Source: Paragordius varius
Taxonomy: Eukaryota; Animalia; Nematomorpha
DNA: 64,000 nucleotides
Reading direction: 5' to 3'
NCBI GenBank assembly: GCA_964247055.1
Contig: OZ176059.1
Span: 3,534,001 to 3,598,000, forward strand
Of the stretch, positions 1,784 to 57,167 are shown piece after piece (the stretch's first letter is position 1; each line of letters begins with the position of its first letter). Both the position numbers and the translations under genes were made by a program. The notes beneath the pieces were generated by a model. The model ran no database searches. It was not told where the DNA came from and was given only the letters and a program-made list of their open reading frames with translations.

Positions 1784-3747
1784 ATCGGTATATATTTATA
1801 ATTAGTTTATTGATATAATATTATATTTCAATTATATTATTTTAATTATTTCATGTATATATTTTTTTATTTAAATATTATGATTTTATTTAAATATTTT
1901 GATTATTTTATTTTAAATTATTTGTATATAAAACAAATAATTATTTTAATATTATTATTTAAAACTTAAATTTTGAAAAATAAATATACAATATTAGAAA
2001 AATATTGTTTGAAAATCTCAAAAATTAAATTTATAATCTATCCCAATGTTTTAACAATTAATATCCTTATAAAACATCAAAATACCTGTATATAACAATT
2101 CATATAGGTTTTTATTAATAAATAACTGGTAAAATAATATAAATTGAATCTATTATTAATAATAAACATTTCTTAAATACATTATTCATCGCTATTCTTA
2201 AGAAAAATATTAATTTGTTTTAACATTTTAGATAATTAATCTTCCATATAATAGAGTTTAATATTCATTGTGTTAATAAAATATTTTACCAATCCACGTT
2301 TATAAGCGACTTTATGTAACCTTACATTAATAATTGATTTTCATATTTAATGTTCAGTTAGTCTAGGTAACAGTTTATCTTTGCAAAGTTTCTTAAATAA
2401 TACATTAAAATTGAAATTAACGGACAAAACGTAATAATATAAAAACAAATTTTTTTTCTAAACTTGATTTAACTGACTTTTCTAACCTGAAAAGTATAAT
2501 ATAGAGATGTATATTCGCAACGCATTCAATTATATATACAATCGTAATTAAATAATTTATTTGAAAAACATTAATGTTTTTAAAATTGACTTTTGGAAAA
2601 AAATATTTGTTTTTTTTATTTTTACTTTTTGTCCGTATAATTTTAATTTTTACTGTAGTAATAACAAATAATTTTATTTCATTTTTTAGTAAATTTAATT
2701 ACAGTTCATATGGAAAGTTAATCATTAATTATATAATCATTAATATGAAACTAATTTCTGTTAACTTGATTTTAAACCATATTTTGGCGTATGCCATTTG
2801 TTTTCATTATTTATCAATCATTTTTTATATTACATTTCCAACAATGTTTTTAGATTTTGGTGATTCCACTTACAAACTTTGGTGTGATCTCGATACTAAA
2901 CTTTATAAAGTAGAACTCAAAAATCAACCAGAAACTTATATTGATGATCCATCTAAACCGGCCTAATTTATTAATTTATTGGAAAATGAAGATTTCACAA
3001 ACGATGATTTACGGAGAATTCTGAACGCTTCTTTCCATAATCTTTGCTATTTAAGGGAACATAAAAGCGAAAATACTCAACAAAATTATAACTTAGATGA
3101 TGAAAATACCGAAACCATCAAAGATGCCTTAATAATTAATTTGATAAAAGAACAGACAGAACCTTTAGATCTTTCGCTGAAAAAATCAATAAAAAGTATT
3201 AAAAAAATTACTCTGGTGTGTGACAGTATTGATTCCAATGATATAAGCATGAATGATATTAACAATCTATTTGATGATAGTAACAAAACAAAACCTAATA
3301 AGTCTTTAAACTCTTCAAAAATGGTTAATAATTATCGATGTATTCAATGTGATAAAATTTATAAGGACAAACATGTTTTAGTCACACATATTCGTTCTGT
3401 TCATGAAAAAGTTAAATACTCGTGCAAAATTTGTTCGAAAATATTTTCTAACAAAGGCAATCTTTCTAGGCATATTTATTCAGCTCATGAGAAAATTAAA
3501 GGCGAATGTCCGATTTGTAAAAAAGAAATATGCCGAAAAAGGCTATATTTCAACACATATTCAGAGTGTTCACATGAGAATTAAACATGAATGTCCAATT
3601 TGTAAAAAAGAATTTACTCAAAAATGCGCTCTTGCCACACATATTCTGGGTGTTCACAGAAAAATTAAACATGAATGTCTGATTTGTAAAAATGAATATA
3701 CTGGAAAAGGCAATCTTAACAGGCATATAAAAAATGTACATAAATGA
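1784..3747 (+). pseudogene. Zinc-finger family copy 1, 5 fingers, disabled
   Basis: Exon 2 is 2854-3747. Nonsense TAA at 2964-2966 where paralogs have TCA; frameshift near 3530 inside finger 3; exon-1 ATG is ATC at 1784. Confidence 0.85.
2403..2655. mobile_element. MITE-1 (Tc1/mariner-type, TA TSD) in the intron of copy 1
   Basis: Long TIRs ta|CAGTAAAAAT..TTATACGGACAAAACGTAA / TTTTGTCCGTATAA..TTTTTACTG|ta. Confidence 0.75.
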
Positions 3748-3818
3748 ACACTTAATTTAACATATATAATATATTAAATGTAGCATTAAATATATTTTGT
3801 TCAAATATCCATTTCGTA

Positions 3819-3824
3819 AATAAA
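3819..3824 (+). terminator. Candidate poly(A) signal AATAAA of the zinc-finger 3' UTR
   Basis: ccatttcgtAAATAAAagat about 70 nt after the stop; also after copies 3, 5 and 6. Confidence 0.5.
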
Positions 3825-4049
3825 AGATATTGAGATTCATATTATTTTATAAAGACCTTTATTGCAAAACGCATTTTCGTTAGTAGAATATTCAGGATTG
3901 TTTTACACAAAATAGAGTTAGTTTCGTAACACAACTAATTTTCTATTCAAATAATTTTCATAGGAAAAAAATTAAATTTTAATATGTATGGTTGTTTAAA
4001 AAAATTGTATTTATATTTTCATGTCCGTATAATATCAATTTTAACTGTA

Positions 4050-7614: not shown

Positions 7615-8050
7615 CTTTATATCATGCTATCTTCTAAGAAGTTTTTTTCAATAATAATATTGATTTCAATACAAAGGACTGTTATATTGTTTTCTCTTAG
7701 TAATAAAAAATGACATTATCACTGTAATTGAAAATAAATTTTTTTATCAAAAAAGTTTTTTCAATATAATTTAATATGATTTATTTAATTTATTAATAAA
7801 TCATCGACATTAATTACAAAAATTTAATTATTAAATTTTAAAAAAACCAAAATAAAATACAATTATATAAGATTAGTTTAAATAAATTTATTTTTAAATA
7901 AAGTTCTTTTTATATTTCAAAATTATTTTTAAATCATTAAATAATGAAAAACAATAATTGAAAAAATGAAAGGACAGACGATTTCATTTCTTAACGGTTT
8001 TTTTGATTGTCTGCTTTTTATTATTCGAAAAAATATTCAAATTTTGGAAA

Positions 8051-8268
8051 ATGGGTATATTTCAAATTTTAATATTTTTTAAATATTTAAATAATTTAAT
8101 TATTTTATTTTAAATTATTTGTATATATTAATTTAATTTTTAATTTTAATATCATTATTATTTATAACTCCAATTTTTAAATTAAATTATAAATTAATTA
8201 AATTTTGTTTAATTAATGGATTATTTTTTTAATTTAATTTAATATAATTTATCTTGTATTAAACTTAT

Positions 8269-8301: not shown

Positions 8302-9991
8302 TTAAGATTCGAAAATTTTGTAATTTTTTAAATTGTTTTTTATTTTATATAGTTATTGTTATCATTAATTAATTTAAAATTTATAACATAAATATAGCTA
8401 TATAATTAAAATTAAATTCATAATCAATTTTTACCAATCAATATTCCTTAATAATCATATATACGTTTTTATTGGTAAAATTTACTGATCATTTGATAAT
8501 TCTCATTATATATATTTTATTTATTTTTTTTATATTAATAACAACACCGGTTTTTTCAGAAAAACATTAAATATTTTAAAATTTTAATTAATTTTTTATT
8601 TAATAATTTTGTCAATTTAGGGTTCATTGTTTTAAATATCATACCAACCACCTTTATCAGCGACTTTCTTTAAGATATTAATTATAATTTATTTTTCAGT
8701 TGGTCTATTAACAGTTTAGCTTTGCAAAGTTTCTCAAATATTACATCAATATTGAAATTAACGGACCAAACGTAATGATATAAAAACAAATATTCTAAAA
8801 AACAAATATATTTTTAAATCTTGATTTAACTGATTTTTTTAACCTGAAAATAATATAGAGATGTATATTCGCAACGCATTTAATTATATGCTTTACAATA
8901 ATTAAATAATTTATTTGGAAAACATTAATGGTTATAAAAGTATGGTTGTCTTTTGGAAAAAAAATATTTGTCTTTATACTTTAAGGTTTTGTCCGTATAA
9001 TTCCAATTTTTACTGTATTAAGAATAAATAATTTTATTTTATTTCTGAGTAAATTTAATTACAGTTTGAATTTGAACAGTTACTCAAACAAATAATGTCA
9101 TTTAACTTAATATTAAACCGGTTTTTGGCGTGTGTCATTTTATTTCTCATTTTAAAACATTTTTTATAATTAAATTAAACAATTTTTTAGATTTTGGCGA
9201 TTCGACTTACAAACTTTGGTGTAATCTCGATACGAAACTTTATAAAAAAGAACTCAAAAATTAACAAGAAACGTATATTGATGATTCATCTAAACCGACA
9301 TCATTTATCAATTTATTGGAAAATGAAGATTTTACAAACGATGATTTACGGAGAATTTTGAACGCTTTTTTCCATAACCTTTGTTATTTAAGGGAACATA
9401 AAAGCGAGTATACTTTACAAAATAATAATTCAAATGAGGAAAATACCAAAACCAACAAAGATACCCTAATTATTGATTTGGTAGGAGAACAGACGGAACC
9501 TTTAGATCTTTCGCTGAAAAAACCACCAAAAATGAAAAAAATTACTCCGGTGTGCGACAGTATTGATTCCAATGACATAAGCTTAAATGATATTAACAAT
9601 CTAATTAATGATAACATTAATAATACAAAACCTATTGAGTTCCTATACACTCATTTGGAGAATAATCGATGTATTCAATGTGATAAAATTTATAAGGATA
9701 AACATGTTTTAACCACACATATTCGTTCGGTTTATGAACAAGTTACCGTGCAAAAGTTCAAAGTTTTTTTCAGACAAAAGCTCTCTTGCTAAGCACATTA
9801 AGTTAGTTCATGAGCAAATTAAACATGAATGTCCGATTTGCAAAAGAGAATTTACTCAAAAATATCATCTTGCAACACACATTCAATCTATTCATGAACA
9901 AGTTAAGTATCCTTGTCCGATTTGTAATAAAGATTTTTCTAGAAAAAGATCTCTTACCAAACACATTCCATCTGTTCATGAAAAAAACTAA
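8051..9991 (+). pseudogene. Zinc-finger family copy 2, 4 fingers (first two degenerate), disabled
   Basis: Exon 1 ATGG|gt at 8051-8054; exon 2 from 9191. In-frame TAA near 9262 (CAA in paralogs); deletion/frameshift near 9745 destroys finger 2. Confidence 0.85.
8744..9015. mobile_element. MITE-1 in the intron of copy 2
   Basis: Same TIR pair; same position as 2403-2655. Confidence 0.75.
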
Positions 9992-16404: not shown

Positions 16405-16765
16405 CTATTAAATCTTTTTACTCTTCAAAATTGGATAATATTTACCTCAATGTGATAAAATTTATAGGAACAAACGTGTTTTAGCCACACATATTCGTTC
16501 GGTTCATGAACAAATTAAATATACATACAAAATTTGTTTTAAGTTGTTTTCCGACAAAAGCTCTATTACTCAGCACATTTATTCAGTCCATGAAAAAATT
16601 AAACATGAATGTCCGATTTGTAAAAATGCATTTACTAAAAAATGCCATCTTGTAACACATATTCAGAGTGTTCACAGGAAAATTAAATATGAATGTCCAA
16701 TTTGCCTTAAGGAATATACTGGAAAAGGCAATTTTACCAAGCATATTAATAATGTACATAATTGA
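16405..16765 (+). pseudogene. Zinc-finger family copy 3, 5'-truncated (fingers only)
   Basis: Two degenerate fingers, then HECPICKNAFTKKCHLVTHIQSVH and YECPICLKEYTGKGNFTKHINNVHN; shared 3' flank; no N-terminal domain. Confidence 0.8.
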
Positions 16766-16965
16766 ACACTTAATTCAACATATATAATATATTTAATGTT
16801 GCATTAAATGTATTTTGTTTAAATATCCATTTCGTAAATAAAAGATATTGAGATTCATATTATTTTATAAGACGTATTGCAATAAGCATTTTTTTTAATT
16901 AAATATTTGGCATGATATTTGACCGCTCTTGTTTAGAGTTTTTTTTGTAGATAATATATAATTTA

Positions 16966-18340: not shown

Positions 18341-20419
18341 TCAATTATGTACATTTTTAATATGCTTGGTAAGATTGCCTTTTCCAATATATTCATTGTT
18401 GCAAATCGGGCATTCATGTTTAATTTGTCATGAACAGATTGAACGTGTCTTGCAACATCTGCTTTTCCGGTAAATTCTTTTTTACAAATCGGACATTCAT
18501 GTTTAATTTTCTCATGAACTAAATCTAGAAAGATGGCCTTTGTCAGAAAACCACTTTGAACAAATTTTGCACGGATATTTAACTTGATCATGAACAGAAC
18601 GAATATGTTTAGTTAAGGTGCTTTAATACATATATATCTTATCACATTGAATACATTGAAAATTATTACCCAATTTTGAAGAATTTAAAGATTCAAATGG
18701 TTTTGCATTATTATTGTTATCATTAAATAAATTGTTAATATTATTCAAACTTATGTCATTGGAAGCAACATTTGGGCATACCAAAGTAATATCTTTTACA
18801 TTTTTTGGTGATTTTTTTAGAGAAAGATCTAAAGGTTCTGTCTGTTCTCCTACCAAATCAATAATTAGGGTATTTTTGTTGGTTTTGGTATCATTTTTAT
18901 TTTCATAGTCTAAATTATTATTTTGTTGAGTATTTTCGCTTTTATGTTCCCTTAAATAACAAAGGTTATGGAAAGAAGCGTTCAAAATTCTCCGTAAATC
19001 ATCATTTGTAAAGTCTTCATTTTCCAATAAATTAAGAAATGATGCCGGTTTAGATGGATCATCAATATACGTTTCTTGTTGATGTGTAAGTTCTATTTAT
19101 AAAGCTTTGTATCGAGATCACACCAAAGTTTGTAAGCCGAATCGCCGAAATCTATAAAAATTTGTTAGAAATGTAATTTAATAAGTCAAGTTATCAATAA
19201 TGAAACAATAAATCTTAACAGTCCAAGAAATGACTTAAAAATCAGTTGTACAGGTTTATTATTGCAACTCTAAATAATACAAACATACATTAAAATATTA
19301 CAGCAATGATTAAATTTGACAGATAAAATTTAAAAGCATAAAGAAAAATAATTTTTTATACATTAAAACCATACTTATCAAAAGAAAAATTCTACATAGA
19401 CTATTTTATTATATGTGATATCTAGAATTGATTATATAATAAAAACAAATATTATATGGATTAAAAGTCAAAATATAAAGACAAAAATTTTCTCTAAAAG
19501 ACAACCATACTTTTATAAGCCTTTATTTTTCTTATATTAATTAAATAATTACAATTGTAATATATATTGTGTAACAATTCAAAGCAATAGTTATCTTTTT
19601 TTTAAATCAAGAATAAAAAGTAAGAAAATAGATTTGTCTTTGTATTTTCAAGTTTTGTCCGTATAATATGAAATTTTGCTGTATAACAATTATATCTTTG
19701 TGGTCTTTATTGCAACTCAAATCCATGAGTGTTATATAAATATAAGGTATGGCTGTTAAAAAATATATTTTAGCTTCTTATATCTGTACGTTATTGGATT
19801 TTAGTGGAATTAAATGTAGTCTCAAATTTTGACTAAAATATAAATCCAATATTATTGTAAGGTTGCATACGCTTATAAAGCTCGGTGAAATTTTCAAATA
19901 CAGTGAAAATTAAAAATGAAAAGGCTATTATATAGAAGATTAATTTAAATTTTATAGAGATTAAATATTTTTCTCAAAAGTGGTGTAGACTTTATGAAAT
20001 TAAAAAATTATGAACAAAAAACACAGGTATATTTGTTAATCATATTAGATATAATTTATATAATTTTACCAATTTGTTAATTAATAAAAATGTTAATGAA
20101 TAATAGTATTAGGTAATTATATGTTTAATATTAATTATTTAAAACAAGTTTTTGGAATCAGAAAATTTATTAAAAAATAAGTTAATTATTAAAAATAATT
20201 ATATGGCAATAAATTAATAAAATAAAAGTTTAAATAATCTAAAAATATAAAATTTTAAAATAATGTGTTATATATTGATGATATTTGAAAACAAAAAAAT
20301 AATATGATAATAAAAAAAATTAAGTTATAAATATAATGATATTAAAATTTTATTTAATATATGTATGCCAAATTTTAAATTGATATTTATTAAATATAAA
20401 AACTATAAAATATACCCAT
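18341..20419 (-). pseudogene. Zinc-finger family copy 4 (inverted), disabled
   Basis: Exon 1 ATG at 20419-20417; exon 2 is 19151-18341. 1-nt deletion in YKVEL codons; stop after DKIYMY; further deletions in the fingers. Confidence 0.85.
19437..19681. mobile_element. MITE-1 in the intron of copy 4
   Basis: Degenerate left arm, clear right arm ttttgtccgtataatatgaaattttgctg|ta. Confidence 0.65.
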
Positions 20420-20674
20420 TTTCCAAATAATTTGAATATTTTAATGAATAATAAAAAGCAGACAATTAAAAAACCGTTAAAAAATGAAATCGTCTGTCGT
20501 TTTATTATATTTATTTTATTGTTTTTCAATTATTTTATGGTAAAACTATATTCTAAAAATTAAAAATACTTAATTATTTAAAAATAATTTTTCATATGAA
20601 ATATTGAAATAGCCCGGCTTTATTTATTAACATTATATTAGATTATATTTTATTGATTAATAAAATATTTTTAA

Positions 20675-35827: not shown

Positions 35828-36280
35828 GCCGTTTGAAAAAAGACTAGAATCATTCGAAACGGCCTATAACAATAAAATAATGAAGTATAGCTGTATGGCT
35901 CAACAATTACTAGAGACCTATAATACCCAAGTAATTCCCATTGTTCTAGGGAGGTATTTGAAAAACGACATTCTTTTCGACAAAATCAAGCTTCGATGCC
36001 CTACCCAACTTAAGAAATCAATAGTTATAAGCACAATTAAATCATCCTCCGATATGTAACACATGTTTATGAGCGATAGAAATTCCCTCATAGAAAACAA
36101 CCCAACAAATGCATTTTTTTAATATTTTATATATATATTTATTTTTTTATTTTTCTTTTTTTATATATTTATATATATTAATATTTTTTCTCTTCTCCCT
36201 TGTAACTTCCCATGCCCAATATTGTTGCGTAGCACTTTTCTTCATATATTCTAAATTGTATTTTAAATATTAATAAATTA
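35828..36280 (+). mobile_element. 3'-end fragment of the same RLE retrotransposon
   Basis: Closely matches about 51748-52205 (PFEKRLESFETAYNNKIMKYSC plus the 3' UTR). Confidence 0.88.
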
Positions 36281-38824
36281 TAAAGAACACCTTTAAAAAA
36301 GGTAAGTAAAAAAATGATGTTATTGATTGAAGAAGGAAAATATATTAATTGTTTAATATAAATTATAAAATTTATATCAGGTACGCATTGTTACACTCAC
36401 TGCTGTTTATATATATATATATATATATGTATATATAAATATCGGAAACGTAAATTTCATATTTTTAAATGTTTATAGATATTAAATAAGCAATAGTTTT
36501 AAACTTATAATTAAAATGAGTTATTTTTATTCACTACTATTTTTATTGAAAAACAGTTAATTTATTTTATTTTTTTAAACGGTTTTGTCATATACAGACA
36601 ACTTAAAAATATGAAAACAAATTTTACATTGTTTTTTAAGCTCAATATATTAATTCTCTGGCTAAAAATTGCAAAGTAGGTAAAGTTTATGCTAAACACA
36701 ATCATTAAAATTTTCACAATTGCAACAATACAATTTAAATGCAATAATGTTTATAAAATGGATATCTTTTGAAATTCTTTAAATTTTTACGTTTTGGGGT
36801 ATAATTATAATTTTTACTATATTATGGGAAAACGCCCCCTATGTTGCTATTGATACCCAAATATGAACAAAAACATTCTATTTTAACAAAATATTTTTTT
36901 CGGATGTTTCCTAAAATTGTGTATATTTTTTATGCGAAATTGCTTTAACAAAAAGCTCGAAGGCATTTAAAATTAAATTAAATTTTTTTCGACTTTTATA
37001 TGAATTTTAGCTTAATAATGAAATACATGGTGAAAATAATAAATTTCTATTATATTTGCACTAGATGATCGTATGTTCTAATCAACTTGATGTTTTATCT
37101 GATATAATAAAATATATAACGGAAATGATAATGTATATATCAGAAAAATAGAGTTATATATAAAAAATTTTATGTAGTTAATTTTTATCAAACAACATAA
37201 ATATAAATTAAAGATAACCATGACGTATTTTCATGAACAAATACTATACCTCTAAAATAAAAACGTTATTTGCATCCTAATATAATTTGAATATAATGTC
37301 CCTATAATTAGTATCCATACAAAAATATTAATCTATCATATTTGCATAATTAACAACACATATAATAATACTAGACTACAGTTATCGTGAAATTTGGCTT
37401 GAAGCACCAAATAATGTCAAATTACGTCAAAGATAACAATTAGAATTTACGTTTGATAAAAATTATGACCTTCTTAACAGTTTTTAATAATTTCACTTTA
37501 GTTATAAAATTTAATTTAGGAAAATTTTGTAATTTAGCTTCAGTTATATCTGAACATCCTCCCTTAGTATATGTAAATAAAAAGAAGCTTATGGTTAAGA
37601 TACTAAGCACAACTAACTTTTATGAAACAATCTTTTTTCGACAAACCATCGAAAGATTAATTAGCATCTTTCTTTTAACAATTGTTGGCCGGTTATTTTA
37701 TATATTAATTATATAGATGGCGTTTTTTAAGTGGAACAAATATTAAATTTTAGGCCCTTGTCTAAATATAATTTAATTGATTTAACTAAAAGTTTGTTCT
37801 TTACAGGGTTAAAAATAGCAACTTTATTAAATCCATAAAGTTTATAATAATCATTATATATTTTTCAAATGTATAATACCACACTATCGCCAATGTGGCT
37901 ATTAAAGTCTCCCAGATATTTTTAATTTTTGGCTATAAATAAATATTTTATTAATATATCATAAACCTTTGGGGTAATTTCATACTCCATTCCATTTAAT
38001 ATTGTACCTAACTAATATTTTCACTGGGCTAATATTAAAAAAATGCTGCCTTTTAGGATGAAATTTTAAAGTATCTATACGTCAAACTTTTTCGCCGCCA
38101 TTTTTTTCTTAAATTTTGTAAACTGCGAATTCACGCAAATCGAAAAATATAAATTAACCTCGATAGTTTCTAAATTACAATTTACCACAAATATATTTGA
38201 TTTTATAATGTTTATTTTAATCGAGTTTTGGGGGTATCTTAATTTGGTACTTTAGAGGTTTACTGTAAATTTCTATTTTTTTATCTAGAGAAGAGAGATT
38301 GATAATTGTATTAAGCAAAACAACTTCTCAAACAGTGGTCTATTTACCAAGCTTCATTATGATGTGCCCCCAAAATATCGTCTACAAAAATAATGAAAAT
38401 GAAGTGTATAAATTAAAAATTTTAATATTAATAAATTCAGTTTTATAATTCTTCATTTATTAAAGGCCCAATATAAAACTCAAATTTAAAACTTTGTAAA
38501 AAATGAAAATTGGGTTTCATATATATTAATTCTAAAATATATTAAACTGAAAAATCTAGTAAACATTAACATAATTTCAAGAAAAATATTAAAAATTGTT
38601 TGTAATTTATTTTAATAATTTTTCATATAATAGTAATTTTTAGGGAATAAATTAATGTAATATTATAATCCTAGATCTCTTGAGAGATTTTCAGTAATTT
38701 CACATTACTATTAGTAATTATATTAATTTATTTAAAGATTTGATGATAAAAATTTAAAAATTTAAGATAAAAGGAAATAAATGAACAATATCTTTCAAAA
38801 TTCAACTATCTTTGTAAACTATAA

Positions 38825-41005: not shown

Positions 41006-41895
41006 TTGAAAATATTTTTCTACAGAAAATTTAGTATATTTATATTCATTAATAAGAAAAAGATATGCAAAATAAATGTGGACGATGTTATCTATCTTTG
41101 AATGTAAATTAAACAAAACTTATTATGTAATGATAGAATCATAATCATATTTGTCAACCACTTAATAATTTTATATTTAATTATAGCAATAAAAGTACAG
41201 TTTATTCTTTAAAAGAGATAGATTTATTAAAATGGTCTTTTAATATTAAAAATGGCGCTGTCTTTTATAAAATAAAAATTCATTTACATGCCAAACTTAT
41301 ACTTAGCAGAAAATCGCAAAATAAAAATATCCCGATTAAGATATTTTTACTATCTCTAAATATATTTTTAAAATATTCATGTTAAAAAAGAATTGACAGA
41401 TTGTTTTCTTTGATAAATGAAAAAAATCATTAGAAATATTTGCATTAAATTTTATCAAAAATAAATATTTTATATTTTTTTTGATAATTATAAAAAATAA
41501 TCTAAATCACAAAACATAATCAACCCCCGTCATTATTATTAATAAATAAAGTTTGGTAATTGTAAAAAGTATCAATATTTAGTAAGTGCAGGTTAAAGTA
41601 AATCAAAATTATATATAATATTTATTAGTTAAATAAATTATTTAAATTATTAATAAATAAAACCGTAATTTTTTAAAAATATTTAATATAACCTTCTAAG
41701 GTAAATTACTAGAATTTATATATATAATTTAAAAATATTAAAAAATTACTTTATTTTAAAATGTTTTAAACCCAAAAATAATTGAAAATAATTCAAATAT
41801 TATGAAATGAAACAACAGACGATTACATTAACAACAGTTTTTTTAAATTGTCTGCTTTTTGTTTATTCGAAAAAATATTCAAATTTATTTGGAAA

Positions 41896-43769
41896 ATGGG
41901 TATTTATATAATATCAAATACTTTAAATGAAATTTATTTATTATATCATATTTTATTTAAATATATATTTTTTGTAAAATAATATTAAAATAATTTGTTT
42001 TAAAAAAATTTAATATTTTTTTATGATTTAATTTAATATTATTTTTGTTTTAAAATATTATAGTAGAACCTATTATATCATTTATAGTTGATAGATAATA
42101 TTTTTAGATTATTATTTAGATTTGGAAATTTTGTATTAATTTTGATATGATTCTATTTATCAATAATTATTTTTGGTTTCAAAAAATATATGTATAAAAT
42201 TCCTAATCTATTTCAATGTTTTAATCAATACTATCATAAAACATCAAGTTACCTAATATTAAAATTAATAGACGTATTAATTTAAATAATTGGTAAAAAT
42301 ATTAAATTTGGTATAATAATAATAAAAATAATTTTAAAACAACACCGCTTTGTTTGAGAAAAATAATAAATTGTTTGATTTTTAAACTTTAAATTAATCT
42401 TCCATATAATAGTTGTTTCATTTGTGGGGTTAGTTGTCTTCTTGATAAAAAATAAATTTATTACCAATCCGCGAATTTCTGCAACCTTCTTAATATTAGA
42501 TAATTTTTTTTAAATAGTCAAAATTTTAAATTAAATCTAATACCGGTAAAATCCAACGTACTAAGGGAAAAAACTAAATATATTTTTGACAGCCATACTT
42601 TATGTTATAACACTCATGATTTACAAAATAGGGAATAGAGATGTAGATGAAAATATAAGGAATTTAAGATATCACACATAATATTATAGTTTATGAAAAG
42701 TATTAGTTTTATAAACTATGATTTCTTTATGTTTTTACATTTTGTCTGTATATTTTCAACCATTACTCTATGGTTTATGTATGCATCATTAATTTATGGT
42801 AATAACTTGATTAGGTTTTAGATTCCTTTCCTGCGTTGTTAAGATTTTTTGTTTCTTCATTGATAACTTGAGTTTTAAATTACATTTCTTTTATTTCGGC
42901 GACTCGACTTACAAACTGTGGTGTGATCTCGATACAAAGTTTTATAAAGTAGAACTCAAAAATCAACAAGAAACGTATATTGATGATCCATCTAAACCGA
43001 CATCATTTATCAATTTGTTGGAAAATGAAGATTTTACAAACGATGATTTGCGGAGAATTTTGATCGCTTCTTTCCATAACCTTTGATATTTAAGGGAACA
43101 TAAAAGCGAAAATACTCTAAAAAATAATAATTCAAATGATGAAATCACCGAAACCATCAAAGATGCCATAATAATTGATTTGGTAGGAGAACAGACGGAA
43201 CCTTTAGATCTATCGCTGAAAAAACCACCAAAAATTATAAAAGATTTTACCTCGGTATGTTCAAATGTTGATTCGACATAAATATGAATAATATAAACAA
43301 GCTATTCGATGATAGTAACACAACACCTATTTTATCTTTAAACTCTTCAAAATTGGGTAATTATCGATGTATTCAATGTGATAAACTTTATAAGGATAGA
43401 AACGGCTTGACCAACCATATTCGTTCGGTTCATGAACAAATTAAATATCCGTGTAAAATTTGTTCGAAAATGTTTTCTAAAGGCAATCTTGCTAGGCACA
43501 TTAAGTCGATTCATGAAAAAATTAAACATAAATGTCCGATTTGCAAAAAGGAATATACTGGAAAAGGCAATCTTGCAACACATATTCAGGGTGTTCACAG
43601 AAAAATTAAATATCATTGCAAAATTTGTTCGAAAATGTTTTATAAAGGCAATCTTGCTAGGCACATATATTCAGTTCATGAGAAAATCAAACATGAATGT
43701 GCGATTTGCAAAAAGGAATATACCGAAAAAAGCAGTCTTGCCAGGCATATTATAAATGTACATAATTGA
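41896..43769 (+). pseudogene. Zinc-finger family copy 6, 5 fingers, disabled
   Basis: Exon 1 ATG at 41896; acceptor AG lost before 42893; TGT>TGA at 43084-43086; deletion near 43275; finger ORF 43284-43769. Confidence 0.85.
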
Positions 43770-44216
43770 ACACTTAATTCAACATATATAATATATTACA
43801 TGTAGCATTAAATATAATTTTGTTTAAATATCCATTTCGCAAATAAAAGATGTTGAGATTCATATTATTTTAGGAAGACGTTTTGAAAAAGCATCGTTAA
43901 TAAAATATTTGGAATGATATTTGACCGGTCTTCTCTGGAGTTTATTTTGTGGGAAAAATCGATAACGACCAAACGTAAAAATTCAAACCCAAATAATTTT
44001 TTTTAAAGACAACCATTATATCTTTATTTCCTAAATATAACTGATTGTTTTAACTGCAAATTGTAAAATAGATTTATTGGTAACACAATCAATTATGTAT
44101 TTTACAATTCTAATTATATATACGATAAATTTGATTCTAAAATATATAGTTTGTCTTTTGAAAAAATTGTCTTTATATGTTCACGTTTTGTCCGTATAAT
44201 TTCAATTTTTACTGTC

Positions 44217-45693: not shown

Positions 45694-46952
45694 TAAAATG
45701 AGTGTCTTGTATCCAAGAGTTAAAAGTAATGAATGAGCCGGCTCAACTGGCTTATTCACATGGCCCCGAAGCCTCTTAATAATTTAATACCTTAATAAAT
45801 ATTTTAGCACGGGGCTCCTTTTAAAATATGCCTTTTAGGATGAAATTTTAGACCAACTATAATTTTAAAATAAACCCACATTTTCGCCGCTATTTTGTTC
45901 TTTAATTTTTTTAAACCGTAAATACAGCACGCAAATAAGTGTTGTTTATTAAGGCAAAGAAAATTAACATGGATAGTTACTAATATTGTAAATTACCGGC
46001 AAATATATTTACTTTTAATATCAACTGTTTGTATTGTGTTTTGAAGCTATTTGAATTTCTAGAGGTTTACTGTGAATTCTATTTTTTTATCTTATACCTA
46101 GAGAGAGTAATAATTATATTAAGCAAAATAACTCTTAAAACTAGTTTTTACTAAGATCATTAAGAAATGCCCCCAAAATATCGTCTACAAAAAAATGAAA
46201 AGCTAAAATGAACAGTAATTTTAATAATAATTTATTAAAATTCAGTACTATTTTAATAATAAATATTATAAGTTTACGGATTAGTCAGTTATTAAAGCCA
46301 CATTGCACTATTGAATATTTTTAAAACAATATAAAACTCAAATTTAAATGTAAAACAAATTTCTAAATTTATTAAACTGGAAAATCTTGTAAATATTAAT
46401 ATATATTTTCTCAAGAAAAACATTAAATTGGTTTATAATTTATTATAAATATTTTTCATATAATTGTGTGTCACTTTTAGAGTATATTTTATTAAAAAAA
46501 TATTTTATTTAACCAGATTTCATGTGTGTTATTCGCAGTAACCTAACATTACTATTAATAATTTAAATAATTTTATTTAATAATAATTTGAAAATATGTT
46601 AATTACAATAAAAACTAAAAATATGCAGAAAGGAAATAACAAACAATATCTTTCAAAAAGTCGACCATACTTTGTAAATTTTAATATTTTTATAAATAAT
46701 CGTCGTCAATAAATGATTGACAATTAGCAAAATAAGTAAGCTATTAATTTAAATTATTCAATAAGAATTATATGTAAAATATAAAATTAAATATATAATT
46801 TAAATAACTTAAAAATATAATACTTTTAAAATCATAAAATATAAACTTTAATATAAATATAAAATAAAAAAACAGACGATCTTATTTCAAACGATTTTTT
46901 TGAATTGTCTGCTTTTTATTTATTCGAAAAAATATTCAAATTTATTTGGAAA

Positions 46953-48845
46953 ATGGGTATTTTTTTTAAATTTTTTAATTTTAATTATTTTATTTTAATT
47001 TATTATTTTTATAAATATTATAAAATAAATATTATTTTATATTTAAATTTTTTATTTAATTATTATATAATATTTAAATAATTTTATTTTAAAACATTTG
47101 TATATATTAAATTAATTATTAATTTTTAATTTTATTTATTTAATTTTTTAAATATATATACATTATTTATAATATGAATATATTTTTTGGATTTAATATA
47201 ATATAATTTATCTTGTTTTGAAAAATTAGCATATTTTATATATTCATAAACTAAAAATTTAAATAATATGTTTTTAGCTTATTTTTTAGATTTTAAAATT
47301 TCTAATTTTTAAATTTTTTTCAAAATTAATTTATTCAGAGGTTTTTTGATTTAAATATATTTTTGTAAAATGTAAAATTAAATTCATATGTTAAAATTCA
47401 TAAACGTTTAATTAAATAAATAATTGGTAAAAAAAATTCAATTTAATTAAAACAACAACGCGTTCCTTGAGAAAAATGATATATTGTTTATATTTTTATA
47501 ACTTAATTAATATTCCTTAGTTTTGTCACTTTTAGTGTTCATTGTATTATATAAAATATTTTACCAATCCCCTTTTATAGCGACTTTTATGTAATCTTAT
47601 ATTAATAATAATTTTAATTAATGAGTATGTCTAATTAACAGTTCAATTTTGCAAAGTTCAAATATTACATATCAATTAAAATTAACGGACAAAACGTAAT
47701 AATATGCAGACAATTATGTTTTTCTAAAAATAAATATACCTTTTTAAATCTTGATTTTTTTACTTATTATTCACTGTTAACTGCGAAGTAAGAATTAGAC
47801 ATATTAATATGGTAACACATCGTAATTAAATAATTTATTTAAAAAATTAATCTTTGAAAAGTATAGTTGTCCTTTTAAAAAAATATTGTCTTTATATTTT
47901 TACGTTTTGTCCGTATAATTCCAATTTTTAGTGTATTTAATCAAATTTGGTTATAAACCATTTTTAGGGTATGTCTCGTTTCATCATTTATCAATCATTT
48001 TTTATATTACATTTCTAACAATGTTTTTAGATTTCGGCGATTGGACCTACAAACTTTGGTGTGATCTCGACACTAAGCTTTATAAAGTAGAACTCAAAAA
48101 TCAACAAGAAACTTATATTGATGATCCATCTAAACCGGCCTCATTTCTTGAATTATTGGAAAATGAAGACTTTACAAACGATGATTTAAGAAGAATTTTG
48201 AATGCTTCTTTCCATAATCTTTGTTATTTAAGGGAAAAGAAAAGCGAAAATACTCGGCAAAATAATAATTTTAATGATGAAATTAAGAAAGTTACCAACA
48301 AAATCCACAAAAACTCATTAATTGATTTGGTAGGAGAACAGACGGAACCTTTAGATCTTTCGCTGAAAAAACCACCAAAAATTAAAAAAGATATTACCTC
48401 GTTATGTTCAAATGTTGATTCCAATGGCATAAGCTTGAATTATATTAACAAGCTATATAATGATAGTAACAAAACAAAACCTATTGGTTTAAACTCTTCA
48501 AAATTGGGTAATAGTTATAGATGTAACCAATGTGATAAGATATATATGTATAAAAGCGGCTTGGCAACACATATTTGTTCTGTTCATAAACAAGTGAAAT
48601 ATCCGTGCAAAATTTGTTCGAAAATATTTTCTAACAAAGGCAATCTTGCTAGGCACATTAATTCGTTTCATGAAAAAATTAAACATGAATGTGCGATTTG
48701 CAAAAAGAAATATACTGAAAAAGGTAGTCTTGCAACACACATTCAATCTGTTCATGAAAAAATTACATATAACTGTAAGATTTGTAAAAAGGAATATACT
48801 CAAAAAGGCAATCTTGCTAGGCATATTAAAAATGTACATAATTGA
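46953..48845 (+). CDS. Intact C2H2 zinc-finger protein (copy 7): conserved N-terminal domain, PLDLS motif, 4 fingers; predicted join(46953-46956,48031-48845), 272 aa
   Basis: Open frame 48031-48845 (DFGDWTYKLWCDLDTK...EPLDLSLKK...) with four C-x2-C-x12-H-x4-H fingers. Preceded by acceptor tttttag; upstream gaaaATGG|gtat supplies M and the G of GAT. Alternative unspliced start ATG at 48021 (MFLDFGD, 274 aa). Confidence 0.88.
47668..47933. mobile_element. MITE-1 in the intron of intact copy 7
   Basis: attaacggacaaaacgtaat ... tacgttttgtccgtataattccaatttttagtg|ta. Confidence 0.75.
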
Positions 48846-49843: not shown

Positions 49844-52206
49844 CTACCCTCAGGTCATTCCTAATGGAAGCAGGTGGATCCCAAAGGTATCCTTTTGGCT
49901 AAAATTTTTAATTTGTGTTTAAACCATAGAATGATTCCTAATCATTGGAAGATAACTAAGTCAATTTTTGTTTTGAAAAAAAAGGGAGACCCTTTTCTTG
50001 TTTCAAGTTGGAGACCCCTTTCTCTAAGCAATACTATTTATAAATTACTTATTGCCACCGTATTTCCAAGCATATTTTTAAAAACAACTTATTACCATCA
50101 ACCCAGAAAGGATTTATGCCATTTGATGGCTGCTTTAAGCATAATTATATTTTATAAAAATCAAATACTGATGCTAAACATAATAAAAAAGATATTTTTG
50201 TAGCTTTTATTGATATCACAGCTGCCTTTGACTCGGTTCCTCACCAGCTGATTTTTGAATGGCTCCCTAATTTTGGTATAGATGATAATATTCAAGCTTT
50301 AATTAAGGATATTTACACAAATTCATGTACTCAGTTCTTTTCCGCCTCTGGGTTAACGCAACCCATTCCTTTCTTGTCTGGCATTAAACAGTGGTGTCCA
50401 ATTTCTGGCCTTCTTTTTAATTTGTCAATCGATTCTGTGTTGAGATCTATGGAAATGGTCACATTGTCCTGGCTTATGCTGATGACATTGTTTTATTGTC
50501 TGACTCTTCTGAACGTCATCAAGTTAGCTCAACTTGTTAGAATGTCTTATTAATGATATTGGTCTTTCGATCAAAGCTGAGAAGTGCAATAGTACTTTTG
50601 CTTCTTGTAGTCCTGTTAAGATTGGTGAAGTTGTCGTTTCCTCAATCGGTCAAGGTGAGTTTGTTAAATTTCTTGGTAAGCCTGTAGGTTTTAATTTCAT
50701 TAATCCCGTTCCTTCTACGGAAATTGTGGATAAAATACATAGTTCTAGCCTCCTCCCTTGGCAAAAGCTAGACGCTATTAAAACTTTTTTCTATCCCACT
50801 ATTTCTCACCAGTTGAGAAATAATGAACTAAAATTGGTTACAGGTGAATTTTTCTAGATAAAAAGCTAACTAAAAAGTTCAAACAAATATTTAATTCCCC
50901 AAGAGATCCACTAACAATTATATTTTTGGCTTCGAAATAAGGGCGCCTTAGGGATGCCCCTATTCCGCGATGACACTAATATATTCCGTGTTGATTCCGC
51001 TTTTAAATTACTAACTAGCTTAGATCCTTCTATAAGGGTTTCTGCTCTCGAGGAACTTAAGGTTTCGGCTAGCTTTCGTTTTAATATTCGATTAGATTCT
51101 ATAACTCCCGATCAATTAGGCAAGTATTTGTCTGGTTATGAAAACCCTCTTGTCTCAAATCCAGCTAATAAATTCCAAAACATTTGGACAATAGCGAGAA
51201 TGGCTTCTGAATCTCTCAAAATTTCCTGGTGGTTTGATGATTCTTTTCAGCCTACAGTAATTACAGAGTTCTCTAAAATCTGCCAAGACAATCGCTCAGC
51301 TGTTGTTTCTAACCTTCGATTTTATAAACGAAAGTTAAAGGATACTACACCATTTTGCTTTGCAGGGTCGGGTGATGGAGTGCGTTGCTGATGATAAGGT
51401 CAGTCCCCACTTCCTATACAATAATAAGGATCTTCGTTTTAGAGACTGGAACTTCATCCATCGAGCGCGACTCAATCTCCTACCAACGAAAATGCGACTC
51501 AGGACGTCTCTGAACAAATGTGCCTTCGCTGCGGAAAGTCTAAAGAAACCCAAGCACACGTTTTAAACCATTGCCTCAAAGATGATAATATAATAACCAA
51601 GAGACAGAACGTCATAGACCTGATTAAAGATAACCTCCCATCAAATTTCAAGATCTTAAGTGAAAACCAAGCCATCGATTCGTCGAGACTACGTCCTGAC
51701 CTCATTGTAACAAATGGCACTGATTGCTTTATCATTGATCCCACAGTGCCGTTTGAAAACAGGTTAGAATCATTCGAAACGGCTTTCAACAATAAAATAA
51801 TGAAGTATAGCTGTATGGCTCAACACTTACAAGAGACCTTAGCAATACCCAGGTCATGCCAGTTGTTGTATAGAGCCTAGGCTCTTGGTATTCAAAAAAT
51901 GATATTTTTTTAAGATCAAGTTCCAAGCCCTACGCAACTTAAAAAATCAATAGTTAAAAACACAATAATTCATCCGACATGTACCACATGTATATGAGCG
52001 GTCGAAATTCCCTTATAGACAACAACCCAACAAATGCATCACTGTAATATTTTTTATATATATATTTCTTTTTATATTTATTTTATTTTTTATATATATA
52101 TATATAATATTTTTTCTTTCTTCTCCCTTGTAACTTCCTCATCCCCAATATAGTTGAGTAGCACTTTTCTTCATTATATTGTATTTTTATATATAAATAA
52201 ATAATA
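49844..52206 (+). mobile_element. Degenerate non-LTR retrotransposon with restriction-like endonuclease (NeSL/Utopia type), 5' part missing
   Basis: RT motifs WKQVDP..LAKIFNLC, KKGDP..SWRPLSLSNTIYKL, QKGFMPFDGC, AFIDITAAFDSVPH, GIKQWCPIS, LAYADDIVLL; CCHC finger CLRCGKSKETQAHVLNHC; RLE RPDLIV..FIIDPTVPFE..KIMKY. Multiple frameshifts and stops. Confidence 0.9.
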
Positions 52207-52216
52207 TCTGTTCTTA
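52205..52216 (+). ncRNA. 12-nt U2 snRNA tag (about nt 38-49) at the 3' junction of the RLE retroelement
   Basis: TATCTGTTCTTA is the U2 sequence that follows GTGTAG; it sits directly after the AT-rich tail of the element. Confidence 0.6.
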
Positions 52217-52219
52217 AAA

Positions 52220-53500
52220 GACACTTTTAAATAAAGGGTAAAATTATTGATTGAAGAAGGAAAATATATTAAATATATTGGAATTGGATAATGTTAATCA
52301 TTTAAATTTTTAAAATGTCCTCACCCGTACAAGATATGTTTTATAAAAAAATATAAACGAAATTAGGGTATATATTTGTTGTATTTTTTTTAAACATTTC
52401 ATTATTAAGCGTATATTAGTGTTGATTATTTATAATTAAAATAATTTAATCATTGGTCCTTTGTTTTGTAATTAATTACATATTATGTTTCTCCAAAGAC
52501 TCAATTTATTTTATAAGTTTAATAATAACATGGAGAAACGTCCCTTTCTCTTGCTAATACCCAAATATAGGTCAAAACATAACTGTCTATTCAAAAAATG
52601 TATTTTTTGCTTCAAATTTTTTAATATGATTTTATATGTTTTTAAAAGATGGCAATAACATAAATATCTATCACATATATACAAGATATTATAAAATAAT
52701 TTAAAAATAAAAATGTTGGTTATTTATTTATGTATTTAGAATATATATTAAAATAAAAATAACATTCATTTGTTGAGTTAGTGTCTAGAAAACCAAAATT
52801 TGTTTTTTTTTCCATATACTCTTTAGGGTCAATTATCCATCTAACATAATATAATTACATTTCTAGAGAGTTTTGCTTAAATAAATTAAAAATAGGTTAT
52901 TTTAACAGAACATACGAAAATGGCATATTGTTAACACCGTTTTATGTTTTGTAAAAATTAAATACTACTATAAAGATCGTCATTTTTTTAAAACACTTTA
53001 TATATATTTATTTGATGTAATAAAATTTATTAATTTTAAAAATACTAACCATTGACCACTTGCTGAACTAATTCTCAGCTTCAGCTAAAAGTAAGTCAAA
53101 TTTTTATTATAATATAATTTAGCAATATTTTATTTGTATATATATACTCAACGTAAAATACATATTTACATTTTAGGGTGGAATATATTTGATTTTTCAT
53201 GAAAAATGCGTCTTTTCGCTTTAACACGTGAATAGTCAATTTAAAAAGTGTGTGCGTATATGTTTACAGATAATTGAAAATAAATGACAGTCGCTTAAAG
53301 TTGAATATAGAATGTTATATCTAACAGTATATAAGCTGTGTAATAGATTTATACAACATTTCCGCCGTCTAATAATTAAATAAAATTTTCAAAAAATTTC
53401 ATAACTAATCGTAATTTTATTATATTTATAAAAATTATTTGATATTTCGAAAAATGGGTTTGTATAACTATAAATTAAAATAAATTACTCTTAGTATTAT
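52220..53500 (+). repeat. Segmental duplication, paired with about 58870-60180; parts recur at 13900-14600 and 21110-22400
   Basis: Shared ttgattgaagaaggaaaata, aaatgtcctcacccgtacaagatatg, gctgaactaattctca.cttca.cta, tagggtggaat, gtgaatagtcaa. Confidence 0.88.
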
Positions 53501-56452
53501 ATATGTAGTTAAAACAATGAAACTAGCAATAATATTTGTAATATATTTTTACCCAATTTCTCGATAAATAACATACAAATTTTTAGTGTGACTTTCAATT
53601 TTCTTAATTGAATTCTAATGGTAGTTATTTTAAAACACTTCTGACATATAGATATATATATTTTTATTATATTTTGGTTGCAAATGGGTTTTTCATTTCA
53701 AACTAGAGAGAAAGATTAAAAAGTATATACCTTGTTTTTGTATATGATATGCTTTTTTAACACAAGGAATAAGATATAAGTAAATAACATATCTGTAATC
53801 ATTTAGCTTTATAGTATGGAAAAAAATTTAATTGTGACTCGTATTGGAATCAAACAAACTAACATATTTACGGAGAACTTATATGAATCACTTTAAATAA
53901 TTTACTTGGGGCATGTAAAATATTTCGGATAATATAATTTGACAGAATATAACTTTAAGTAAAAATATAAGCGCTATTTTTATATAATATTGCCGAAGCA
54001 AAAAAGACAATAATGAATGGAGGGGCGGATAAAGCTACACTCGTTAGTAGATAAATAATTAAATTACAGTATAATTTTGAATTTATACAGATGATAAAAC
54101 ATAAAGACAAATATTTTTTCAAAAGACCGCTGTACTTTTAAAAACTTGATATAAAAATAACTCATTATTTAAAACTATAAAGTTGAAAATAGAGATGTAT
54201 ATTGGTAACACAATCAATTATATATACAGTTGCCAATTTAATAATTTATATAAGGAAAAATAAGGTTTAAAAAAATTATGAATATCTTTAAAAAAATATA
54301 TTGTTTGTCCGTGTAATTCAAATAGATGCTTATTGTTCTCTTTATATTTAATATATAAAATTATCTTTTAAGTAACTTTATAATACAATTATTATTAGAC
54401 GCAATTATAATTTAAATAAATGTGGATATTATTTAACTTTTGATATGGTATATTTTATTAAATATTAGTGGGTACTTTTGCTATACATATACATAATGTT
54501 TTATTAATCTAAAATTAAATTTTTGCCTAAAAACTATAAATATAATTAATAAATTAAGAAAAATATTAATTTATTACTTTATAAATTAGTCTGTAATTTA
54601 TTATAGCTTTATAATTGTATTAAACCAGAAAATATTTTTGATGAAAGTTAAATGTTTCATTCCAAAAAATATCACTAAAATATATCAACTACATATAAAA
54701 AGCAAAAAAAATAATATCAAAATTTATTAAATTTTTAGAAGTAGGCCCAGATTCCCAAGTATGTTTGGTATTTTAAAATGGGTTAAGCCTTTTAAAATAA
54801 ACGCACAAATGCCGAGATTGCGCGATAAATTTTAAATATATGCTAATATATAGAAATTTATAAAAATGGAAATTTTTAAATTCTATTTAGCAAAATTTTA
54901 TTGAAGCGTACTTTATGCTATTAGAGGTATGGTAACAGTATAAAAGTGTTTATGATATTATATAAGCATTTTTTCTACATAGTTCGATGATCTAAACATA
55001 ACTTCACCACAGAACTTCGTCTGTTTGTCTTCAAGTTAAATATAAATTTCTTTTCAATCTCGAAAATTTGAAAGCAAATACTTTTATAATTAAAATTTTT
55101 AACCGTTCAAAATGTTCACTATTGATTTATATAGAAATAGTTTTTGTATATCTTAAGGTTTTTAAACCATTTCCATAAAATTAATTTAAAAAACGAGTAC
55201 CGATTTCGGACAAATTTTTGTCAAATAAAAAACAAACCTATAAAATCCAAAATTTAGCATGTTAATTTTAAAAATAGCAGAGCCATACATTACCTTTATT
55301 TTAATTAAACAGATGGCATAATATTTTTTGATTCTATATTAAATAATATTCGGGGTTAAAATGAAATAACTGTGTTTACCAAAATATTTTTTCTTTTATA
55401 AGGTATAAATATTCACTTTTTTGTTACTTTTATGATGTTAGTAAGCATAAAATATTTAATCATTATATATATAAAAATCTTTATAAATAGCGTAAATAAA
55501 TTTAGCAATGGCGAAGGCCTGTTTTGAATTTTTATCAATATGATGAAAACAGTTTTACACGCGATTTATATGTGGGTCTTATTAAAAAGTTTTGTTTATA
55601 TTATTTGTAGATATCCGTGCATCTTTATAAATCCCTAAATAAATTTAGCAATGATGAAAAGCTTAAGGTCTGGAAGGCTTTAGCCAAGAAATGATCAATA
55701 TTAAATATTATTAATATACTCATTTATTGTGTAAAAATAAATTATTAATAAATTATGTCAAATTAATTCGTTTCTCCGATCTACTCCTGTCTGATGGCTA
55801 TTCGATATAAGAGCTGTCTGATCTTCTGATATAAACTTTGCTAACTCATTCTCGTCATTTATGGTTTTATAGAAATATATATTACTAAATTCAAACCAAA
55901 TTTAAAAATAATCGATAGTATTCCTGATGATATTAGCATTTAAATGGTTTCAGAGGAAAATTATATGATGTCATATTCTGAATTCTAGAAAAAACATATC
56001 AGTAGGATTTCTTAAATATTCAGTTGAACTTGGTTATAAACTTGAGCTGACTACTTATTCTTGCCTAAATATATAAAAATAAAGCACAAAACATTATAAT
56101 CTTTAACAAGCATTTCCCGAAAAATATTTTTTGATACATGTCACATAATTTCTATAACCTACCATATACATATATTAAATTTACTTTATTTAGGCTAATA
56201 CAGTTTTCACATTCAAAAAATTCATCCTAGTTTTCAAGATATCGGCTTTTGAAATAACCTTAATCCTGAAAAAACCAGGCTCAAAAATTCCTCCATCTCA
56301 ACAGGATGAGGATGGCTTATTCACCACTTTTAATAATCCAGGTGAATGAGCCGGCTCAACTGGCTTCACATGGCCCTAAGTCAATTCTTGGTCTGTAAAG
56401 ATTTATTGCATCCTTTATAAATTATTTTCTATAAATGAAACATAAATTATAG

Positions 56453-57167
56453 AATTCGGGGACTCGACCTACAAACTGTGGTGTCATCTCGATACTAAAC
56501 TTTATAAAGTAGAACTCAAAAATCAACAAGAAACTTATATTGATGATCCATCTAAACCGGCCTCATTTCTTAATTTATTGGAAAATGAAGACTTTACAAA
56601 CGATGATTTACGGAGAATTTTGAACACTTCTTTCCATAACCTTTGTTATTTAAGGGAACATAAAAACGAAAATCAACAAAATAATAATTTAGACTATGAA
56701 AATAAAAATAATACGAAAATCAACAAAGATACCCTAATTATTGATTTGGTAGGAGAACAGACGGAACCTTTAGATCTTTCGCTGAAAAACCACCAAAAAT
56801 AGAAAAAAATAATCGATTTCGACCAAATGTGCATTTATATGGCAAAAATGAGAGCCAAATCGATAGTAATTTTAACGTAAAGCCTAAAAGAATAAATAAT
56901 ATGATAGCGAGCCCGGGAAAAATGTATGAATGTATCCAATGTAACAAAGTATATAAAACGGGAGCGGGATTATATTTTCATAATAAATCATTTAATGAAC
57001 AAATTAAATATCCGTGCAAGATTTGTTGTAAGATGTTTTCTCGCAGTAGCTCTCTTACTCAGCACATTAAGTCGGTTCATGAGAAAATTAAACATAAATG
57101 TCCGATTTGCAAAAAGGAATATACTGGAAAAGGCAATACCAAGCATATTAAAAATTTACATAATTGA
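56453..57167 (+). pseudogene. Zinc-finger family copy 8, divergent linker, no exon 1 nearby
   Basis: N-terminal domain and PLDLS intact; 1-nt deletion near 56790; linker unlike paralogs; finger 1 lacks the second His and finger 3 has a deletion. Confidence 0.8.

Follow-up and report, generated by a model that had tools for sequence, protein, structure and literature searches.

A clustered C2H2 zinc-finger family of Paragordius varius with a conserved N-terminal domain and a candidate CtBP-docking motif

We examined a 64,000-nucleotide stretch of the genome of the nematomorph Paragordius varius, C10:3534001-3598000 (hereafter the window), taken from an assembly of 110.6 Mb in 44 contigs with approximately 22% GC, and found in it a cluster of C2H2 zinc-finger genes. 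When searched by tblastn with copy 7, the window contains eight loci, seven of which are copies carrying a conserved 74-residue N-terminal region (the N-domain) and one of which is a fragment with fingers only; the details of each locus come from lists of open reading frames (ORFs) and three-frame walks, and all searches used exon 2 of copy 7 or of its paralogs. We consider it likely that these loci belong to a lineage-specific family of two-exon genes, shaped by tandem and segmental duplication together with partial gene conversion, whose members act as repressors that recruit the corepressor CtBP. The copies in the window are laid out as follows:

1701-1787, plus strand: relic of copy 1 exon 1, a conserved 5′ region recognised against the exon-1 consensus, with ATC at 1784-1786 in place of the paralogs' ATG
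2854-3747, plus strand: copy 1 exon 2, a pseudogene with TAA at 2964-2966 and a frameshift near 3540-3580
8043-8054, plus strand: end of copy 2 exon 1, with ATG at 8051-8053 plus G, then a GT donor
9191-9991, plus strand: copy 2 exon 2, a pseudogene with an early stop, a frameshift near 9745-9790 and a His-to-Tyr change in finger 1
16439-16765, plus strand: copy 3, a truncated fragment of 3-4 fingers without N-domain or PLDLS
18341-19151, minus strand: copy 4 exon 2, a pseudogene with frameshifts and a stop; its exon 1 ends at 20416-20427 (minus strand)
24362-24373, plus strand: end of copy 5 exon 1, with ATG at 24370-24372 plus G
25378-26110, plus strand: copy 5 exon 2, a pseudogene with a frameshift within the PLDLS island near 25690
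41888-41899, plus strand: end of copy 6 exon 1, with ATG at 41896-41898 plus G
~42895-43769, plus strand: copy 6 exon 2, a pseudogene with its acceptor lost, TGA at 43084-43086, a frameshift near 43275 and five fingers, two of them shortened
46945-46956, plus strand: end of copy 7 exon 1, with ATG at 46953-46955 plus G at 46956 and the intron from 46957, following the paralog consensus
48031-48845, plus strand: copy 7 exon 2, unbroken, with a TGA stop at 48843-48845
within copy 7 exon 2, plus strand: N-domain 48031-48250, PLDLS island ~48330-48365, four fingers ~48516-48839
~56455-57167, plus strand: copy 8 exon 2, a pseudogene with a changed acceptor, a frameshift near 56800 and the second His of finger 1 changed to Asn

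The first-pass annotation of this DNA had described eight paralogs sharing an N-terminus; seven do carry the N-domain, and copy 3 consists of fingers only. The ORF lists and three-frame walks reproduce the N-terminal sequence that it quoted, the EQTEPLDLSLKK peptide and the linkers of HEKIKHEC type, and the six sets of finger-1 contact residues also read as given (DHVT in copies 1 and 2, VHVR in copy 5, DNGN in copy 6, YSGT in copy 7 and TAGF in copy 8). Its statement that seven of the eight copies are disabled agrees with the lesions found in copies 1-6 and 8, which leave copy 7 as the only unbroken copy in the window. As a separate matter, the minus strand approximately 60-80 nucleotides past the stop of four copies carries TTTTATTTACGAAATGGATAT (3805-3825, 16823-16843, 26170-26190 and 43828-43848), which resembles the motif at the end of exon 1, ATTTATTTGGAAAATGGGTAT, in inverted orientation.

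The gene model depends on where conservation begins and ends. In an alignment of 25 paralogs, conservation collapses directly 5′ of TTTTTAG/ATTTCGG (here and below a slash marks an exon boundary), and the in-frame ATG of 'MFLDFGD', present in copies 1 and 7, falls in the pyrimidine tract of the intron and is not conserved among the paralogs; for both reasons, we read TTTTTAG/AT as a splice acceptor. A second conserved block lies approximately 0.85-1.5 kb upstream of exon 2 and ends in ...ATATTCAAATTTATTTGGAAAATGG/GTATAT, with the exon-1 end itself reading TTTGGAAAATGG/GTAT approximately 1.0-1.25 kb upstream of exon 2. The 16-mer at the end of exon 1 has five exact matches in the window, at the right distance and on the right strand for copies 2, 4, 5, 6 and 7, with only 0.18 expected by chance, and both the ATG and the GT are intact at the ATGG/GT junction in 23 of 38 genomic copies. 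The gene is thus predicted to have a short exon 1 ending in ATG plus G, a phase-1 intron of approximately 1.0-1.25 kb that contains a miniature inverted-repeat transposable element (MITE), and a single exon for the remaining protein. Because ATG plus G is joined to AT-TTC-GGC, the protein would start M-D-F-G-D, which is the N-terminus that the first-pass annotation wrote, although the methionine is not adjacent to the domain but is supplied by the separate exon 1. Likewise, the start coordinate of 1784 proposed there is the site of the copy 1 start codon, but the codon is mutated to ATC at that place. Two other solutions were discarded. An ATG mini-exon approximately 75 nucleotides upstream of exon 2 (ATGTC...GTATGT) has in-frame stops in several intact paralogs; an alternative genetic code or trans-splicing, considered in view of the absent ATG and the TAA stops, is not needed in that actin reads with the standard code and exon 1 supplies the ATG.

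The family extends well beyond the window. A count across the genome yields at least 60 matches to the finger array and at least 51 to the N-domain, nearly all of the latter at the end of C10 and the start of C11. The main clusters occupy C10:3.46-3.60 Mb of the 3.71-Mb C10 and C11:0.10-0.64 Mb, with single copies near the ends of C2 and C11, one on the 15.7-kb C29, and one distant finger match (25% identity) at another genomic place. Copies from C10 and C11 are intermixed in the tree, and the two groups may represent a single cluster that the assembly broke at a satellite. The idea that C11 is a haplotig of the C10 end was rejected; a 10-kb piece of the window matches best over a gene unit of only 1.9 kb, at 96% identity. 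This unit, 24181-26093, holds the broken copy 5 and matches an intact copy at C11:636509-638428, with adjoining flank at 86%, a pattern that looks like gene conversion inside an older duplication. The 96% tract begins approximately 190 nucleotides before the ATG and ends shortly ahead of the stop, and would thus span exactly the promoter plus gene. Among the 38 genomic copies analysed in detail (25 were used for alignment and motif counts), 11 have an unbroken exon 2 with ORFs of 266-324 codons, and seven, copy 7 being one of them, have both an unbroken exon 2 and an intact exon 1 within 1.5 kb. Hence, although the tandem amplification implied by calling the family "expanding" is evident, roughly three quarters of the copies are dead and expansion is half of the picture; what is supported is birth-and-death evolution of a lineage-restricted, tandemly amplified C2H2 family. 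The most divergent copies, L031 (C2:15.158 Mb) and L037 (C11:1.833 Mb), form a clade of their own, have six fingers instead of four, lie no more than 40 kb from a contig end and are broken in exon 2; both may represent older founding loci.

Comparison of the different parts of the protein reveals that they have evolved in different ways. The Pfam C2H2 model (PF00096) matches copy 7 at 74.7 bits against a cut-off of 25.2, in four units over residues ~165-274, and individual copies have three to five fingers. All 122 distinct fingers of the family follow C-x2-C-x12-H-x4-H with the usual period of 28 residues, joined by linkers that are not of the TGEKP type. Mean pairwise nucleotide identity is 92% in the N-domain, approximately 88% in the PLDLS region, 75-80% in the linker and fingers, and 55-60% in the intron. 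By Nei-Gojobori counts, the N-domain has a nonsynonymous divergence (dN) of 0.075 and a synonymous divergence (dS) of 0.33, and the resulting dN/dS of 0.23 indicates conservation at the level of the protein, not just youth or conversion. Contact positions (-1/+2/+3/+6) were analysed on fingers 1 and 2, which are comparable between copies because the linker anchors them. With all copies included, dN/dS is 1.18-1.29 for the contact codons and 0.22-0.36 for the other finger codons; with intact copies only, the corresponding values are 1.25-1.26 and 0.18-0.38. Furthermore, 12 independent sister pairs show 0.218 nonsynonymous changes per site at contact positions versus 0.097 elsewhere in the fingers (odds ratio 2.6, Fisher p = 5e-5), with 0.153 synonymous changes per site. 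The first-pass annotation had asked for this comparison of domain and contact sites, and the outcome is as it anticipated: purifying selection acts on the N-domain and on the PLDLS island, and the contact residues, at approximately 1.2-1.3, vary in excess.

The linker between the N-domain and the fingers is of low complexity and variable except for the island IIDLVGEQTEPLDLSLKK, which places a conserved motif of the PxDLS class within an otherwise unconserved segment. PLDLS is retained in 20 of 25 copies, 13 with an exact EQTEPLDLSLKK and seven with PLDLS itself. PLDLS followed by basic residues is the textbook form of a CtBP-docking site, and the genome contains a CtBP orthologue, with exons on the minus strand of C7 near 0.99-1.00 Mb (~988,000-1,003,000; L054, L058 and L059). 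Its N-terminal, PxDLS-binding region is conserved, the next exon corresponds to residues 60-109 of human CtBP1 (E = 1e-13), and the nucleotide-binding and C-terminal parts are encoded by later exons, ahead of a long tail of low complexity; the other dehydrogenase genes recovered by Pfam searches are one PHGDH-like and two GRHPR-like. The docking partner implied by PLDLS is therefore encoded in the genome. Two features of the orthologue itself deserve mention. It reads LLVTPGVSWYS at a position where human CtBP1 reads LICTPHAAWYS, which includes the catalytic histidine, and the dehydrogenase histidine may therefore have been replaced by glycine. In addition, its last exon runs into an open frame of approximately 900 residues of low-complexity sequence.

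The N-domain, in which C10 and C64 are the only invariant cysteines, resembles no family that we could recognise. Pfam gave nothing on the first 110 residues of copy 7 and saw only the C2H2 fingers of the protein. No KRAB box was found by Pfam, either in the whole protein (E-values up to 1) or in 28 N-domains (up to 10); a ZAD was not found, there being no Pfam match and no CxxC in the N-domain; and BTB and SCAN were not found by Pfam or by PDB sequence matching below E = 1. Likewise, a word-indexed search of 5.8 billion proteins with the N-terminal region, a search of the ESM Atlas with the N-domain and a sequence profile search of the PDB all returned no match, the last of these no TALE. Profile searching of 1.84 billion representatives gave three matches, which are considered below, and no animal protein, and hence no FiNZ protein, in a comparison made without a direct FiNZ model. 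The earlier view that the domain is not KRAB, ZAD, BTB or SCAN therefore stands, with no convincing relative in Pfam, the PDB, the ESM Atlas or the profile search, and there was no sign of a transposon origin, neither Pfam nor the profile search yielding relatives among transposases or other proteins of transposable elements. AlphaFold2 modelled the N-domain alone at a predicted local distance difference test score (pLDDT) of 56, with a possible beta hairpin at 6-21 and possible helices at 38-43 and 49-73, and the N-domain with the linker up to PLDLS at pLDDT 45; Foldseek found nothing in the PDB for the predicted N-domain. With regard to the 5.8-billion-protein collection, the mitochondrial COX1 of this genome (C44:7480-8820, L056), which has six in-frame TGA codons for Trp and in which AGA is probably Ser, reaches a best identity of 76-79% there; the collection therefore holds no close relative's mitochondrion.

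The cluster sits in a transposon- and satellite-rich region at the end of the contig. The density of transposons remarked on by the first-pass annotation is borne out in qualitative terms by a match to RVT_1, the 3′ parts of long interspersed nuclear elements (LINEs), a dispersed 1-kb repeat and MITEs. The elements placed in the window are:

25009-25254, no strand assigned: MITE in the intron of copy 5, with inverted ends ACAGTAAAAATT...ACGGA.AAAAC
~26316-26561: second copy of the same MITE, downstream of copy 5
32967-36348, plus strand: decayed non-LTR (long terminal repeat) retrotransposon, with RVT_1 at 33535-33813 and a 3′ part, 35827-36348, in common with 51747-52272
49874-52272, plus strand: fragment of a second decayed non-LTR retrotransposon, the next feature downstream of copy 7

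The MITE (approximately 230 bp, ends ACAGTAAAAATT...ATACGGACAAAACG) lies in the intron of most copies, approximately 120-340 nucleotides upstream of exon 2, and recurs approximately 0.2-0.45 kb past the stop; it already belonged to the duplicated unit before amplification began. A search for inverted repeats bounding the gene unit found only the MITE ends. The repeat of approximately 1 kb, at ~27930-28930, overlaps a 114-codon ORF on the minus strand (27910-28254) that has no Pfam match. Nine contigs or more carry copies of this repeat with 83-93% identity, in places as short tandem arrays (C4:5.46 and 5.50 Mb; C9:1.68 Mb).

These observations suggest how the family might work. The three to five fingers would bind DNA with a preference particular to each copy, their contact residues diversifying from one copy to another, and the conserved EQTEPLDLSLKK peptide would dock the CtBP encoded in the genome and so bring about repression. 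The N-domain would add a further constrained function, perhaps self-association or the binding of a second partner. Local duplication would supply new copies, which would then exchange sequence through conversion and diverge at their contact residues before, in most cases, dying. Several observations weigh against this scheme. Given linkers that are not TGEKP and the H-x4-H spacing, DNA binding by the fingers is assumed. The ratio at the contact codons is only modestly above 1 and comes from simple pairwise counts that include pseudogenes. The N-domain lacks a confident fold prediction at the pLDDT values given above, two otherwise intact copies have altered motifs (PLHLS in L009 and LLDLS in L023), approximately three quarters of the copies are broken, and the window's words are found in DNA sequencing runs, while RNA-type runs of the species contain almost none of them and are uninformative on expression.

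It is worth considering which other explanations fit the same facts. The family could be real and the repressor label wrong, if its members are architectural, insulator-type or activating DNA-binding factors, or if PLDLS serves a partner other than CtBP. Many ZAD zinc-finger proteins (ZAD-ZNFs) are factors of exactly these kinds, the largest conserved block of the protein is the N-domain and not PLDLS, and the two unbroken copies with altered motifs are easier to place; nonetheless, PLDLS with its basic residues has the textbook docking form and is the sole conserved island in the linker, and the CtBP gene with its conserved N-terminal region is present, so that we regard this alternative as rather unlikely. 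It is less probable that the cluster is a relic in decay that no longer serves a function, its unbroken copies simply being the youngest duplicates. The loss of some 75% of the copies, the position of the cluster in repeat-rich DNA beside satellites and the near absence of its words from the RNA-type runs (uninformative, as said) could be read in that way. However, the N-domain and the finger scaffold have kept dN/dS values of 0.23 and 0.2-0.4, respectively, over a dS of approximately 0.3-0.5, the ATGG/GT junction and the acceptor are invariant, and seven complete gene models of approximately 270 codons persist in a genome of 22% GC.

The two remaining alternatives concern origin. That a transposable element carries the gene or gave rise to it, and that the gene has spread by transposition, might be suspected from copies that lie among MITEs and LINE fragments with a MITE in the intron, and from a gene-sized unit of 1.9 kb that is 96% identical between two contigs. 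We find this very improbable: apart from three contig-end sites, copies occur only in two adjacent clusters, the unit has no terminal repeats around it and no relatives among transposases or other transposon proteins, and its 86% flanks fit conversion within an older duplication. The other alternative, to which we give little credence though somewhat more than to transposition, is that the N-domain is descended from, or has a common ancestor with, one extended TALE-like unit of the Legionellales; it would then be a helical module that binds nucleic acid or protein, and not a new fold. It arises from the three matches in the 1.84-billion profile search. Setting aside P0002, which looks like translated repeat junk, the matches are P0001 (L055:8001-11408), from a bacterial contig where it lies beside a ribosomal-protein operon, and P0003, from a metagenome-assembled genome of the Legionellales. 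Both are tandem-repeat proteins, and P0003 is TALE-like, with E = 1e-27 to AvrBs3, dHax3 and BurrH. In hhalign, the N-domain matches the P0001/P0003 repeat unit at 88.8% over 48 columns, a comparison chosen post hoc, and in the reverse direction the bacterial profile matches the N-domain alone in this genome (26 of 26 matches, best E = 0.016). However, P0001 owes its score to a single weak match that is counted again in each of 13-19 near-identical repeats, an independent profile built from further proteins of that bacterial family (P0127, P0128 and P0129) keeps the register but reaches only 14% in hhalign, the N-domain is a single unit with no GGS loop, and the PDB search gave no TALE. Thus, the resemblance offers a weak lead and not a family assignment. 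As regards the bacterial proteins themselves, those of this Legionellales type (P0001, P0003, P0127-P0129) have units of 47-58 residues with an extra helix (PLTQLxxLxxAGF) before the usual two, and P0001, which lies between insertion sequence (IS) elements, has 19 near-identical units of 52 residues and an N-terminus that resembles a nuclear localisation signal.

We return to a family of CtBP-recruiting repressors as the explanation we prefer, and to what it would mean. The current view is that zinc-finger clusters that evolve fast and have an N-terminal module of their own arise repeatedly in animals as a response to transposons, KRAB, ZAD and FiNZ being the examples, and every further independent case helps to tell the necessary parts of the design from the rest. 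We hesitate to extend this to the present family, and consider it rather doubtful that it is an independently evolved, KRAB-like defence in which a zinc-finger cluster with a CtBP-docking peptide and a new domain silences the genome's own transposons, MITEs or satellites; if it were, it would be the first of its kind to rely on CtBP in place of TRIM28. The family is small enough to be studied whole, with approximately ten live genes, in a neglected lineage, and with a corepressor apparently recruited through a short linear motif. Were both CtBP recruitment and the targeting of repeats true, the arms-race model would extend to a new phylum and a new corepressor; otherwise, the family still provides a clear-cut case of birth and death accompanied by gene conversion.

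It is informative to set the family beside known systems. The likeness to the Legionellales TALE-like repeats (P0003, P0127, P0128 and P0129) is a weak one, in one register, between KPxSFLxLLxxxxFTxxDLxxIL here and PLTQLxxLxxAGFSxxxLVxxL there, but this protein has a single unit and not an array, it has no GGS/RVD (repeat-variable diresidue) loop, and support collapses with the independent profile. The single-copy CtBP recruiters (ZEB, Kruppel/KLF3/8/12, ZNF217, ZNF516 and EVI1/PRDM16) also have a PLDLS-type motif in a disordered linker beside C2H2 fingers, and the family motif followed by basic residues is like the PLDLSCK of adenovirus E1A. However, those recruiters are conserved single genes, whereas in this family the motif characterises an entire cluster that evolves fast. 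The insect ZAD-ZNFs have likewise expanded within one invertebrate lineage, and they have approximately 75-90 residues of N-terminal domain in front of a linker and C2H2 fingers, but the ZAD is a C4 zinc-binding dimerisation fold, in contrast to an N-domain with two invariant cysteines and no Pfam match.

Two further parallels in behaviour come from vertebrates. With the tetrapod KRAB zinc-finger genes (KRAB-ZNFs), the family shares its arrangement in tandem clusters, turnover by birth and death, the pairing of a conserved module at the N-terminus with variable fingers, excess change at -1/+2/+3/+6, and the placement of most coding sequence, fingers included, in one last exon. It differs in that there is no KRAB box, in that the presumed corepressor is CtBP acting through a linear motif and not TRIM28 through a folded domain, and in having only three to five fingers, with non-TGEKP linkers and H-x4-H spacing. 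The FiNZ-ZNFs of cyprinid fish are a lineage-specific family with a new N-terminal domain (PMC10547256). They too are lineage-restricted, massively duplicated C2H2 proteins with adaptively changing fingers and a short conserved N-terminus that has no known relatives, but the FiNZ domain has 28 residues and approximately 700 genes, as compared with 74 residues and approximately 50 copies, roughly ten of them intact, in this family; there is no sequence similarity between the two, PLDLS is hard-wired in this family, and FiNZ is backed by expression and knock-down data where this family is known from its sequence. What distinguishes this family is the new 74-residue domain, a putative linear CtBP motif common to its members, and fingers of H-x4-H type with non-TGEKP linkers at the usual period of 28 residues; in its evolution, the family behaves like another independent family in the style of KRAB, ZAD and FiNZ.

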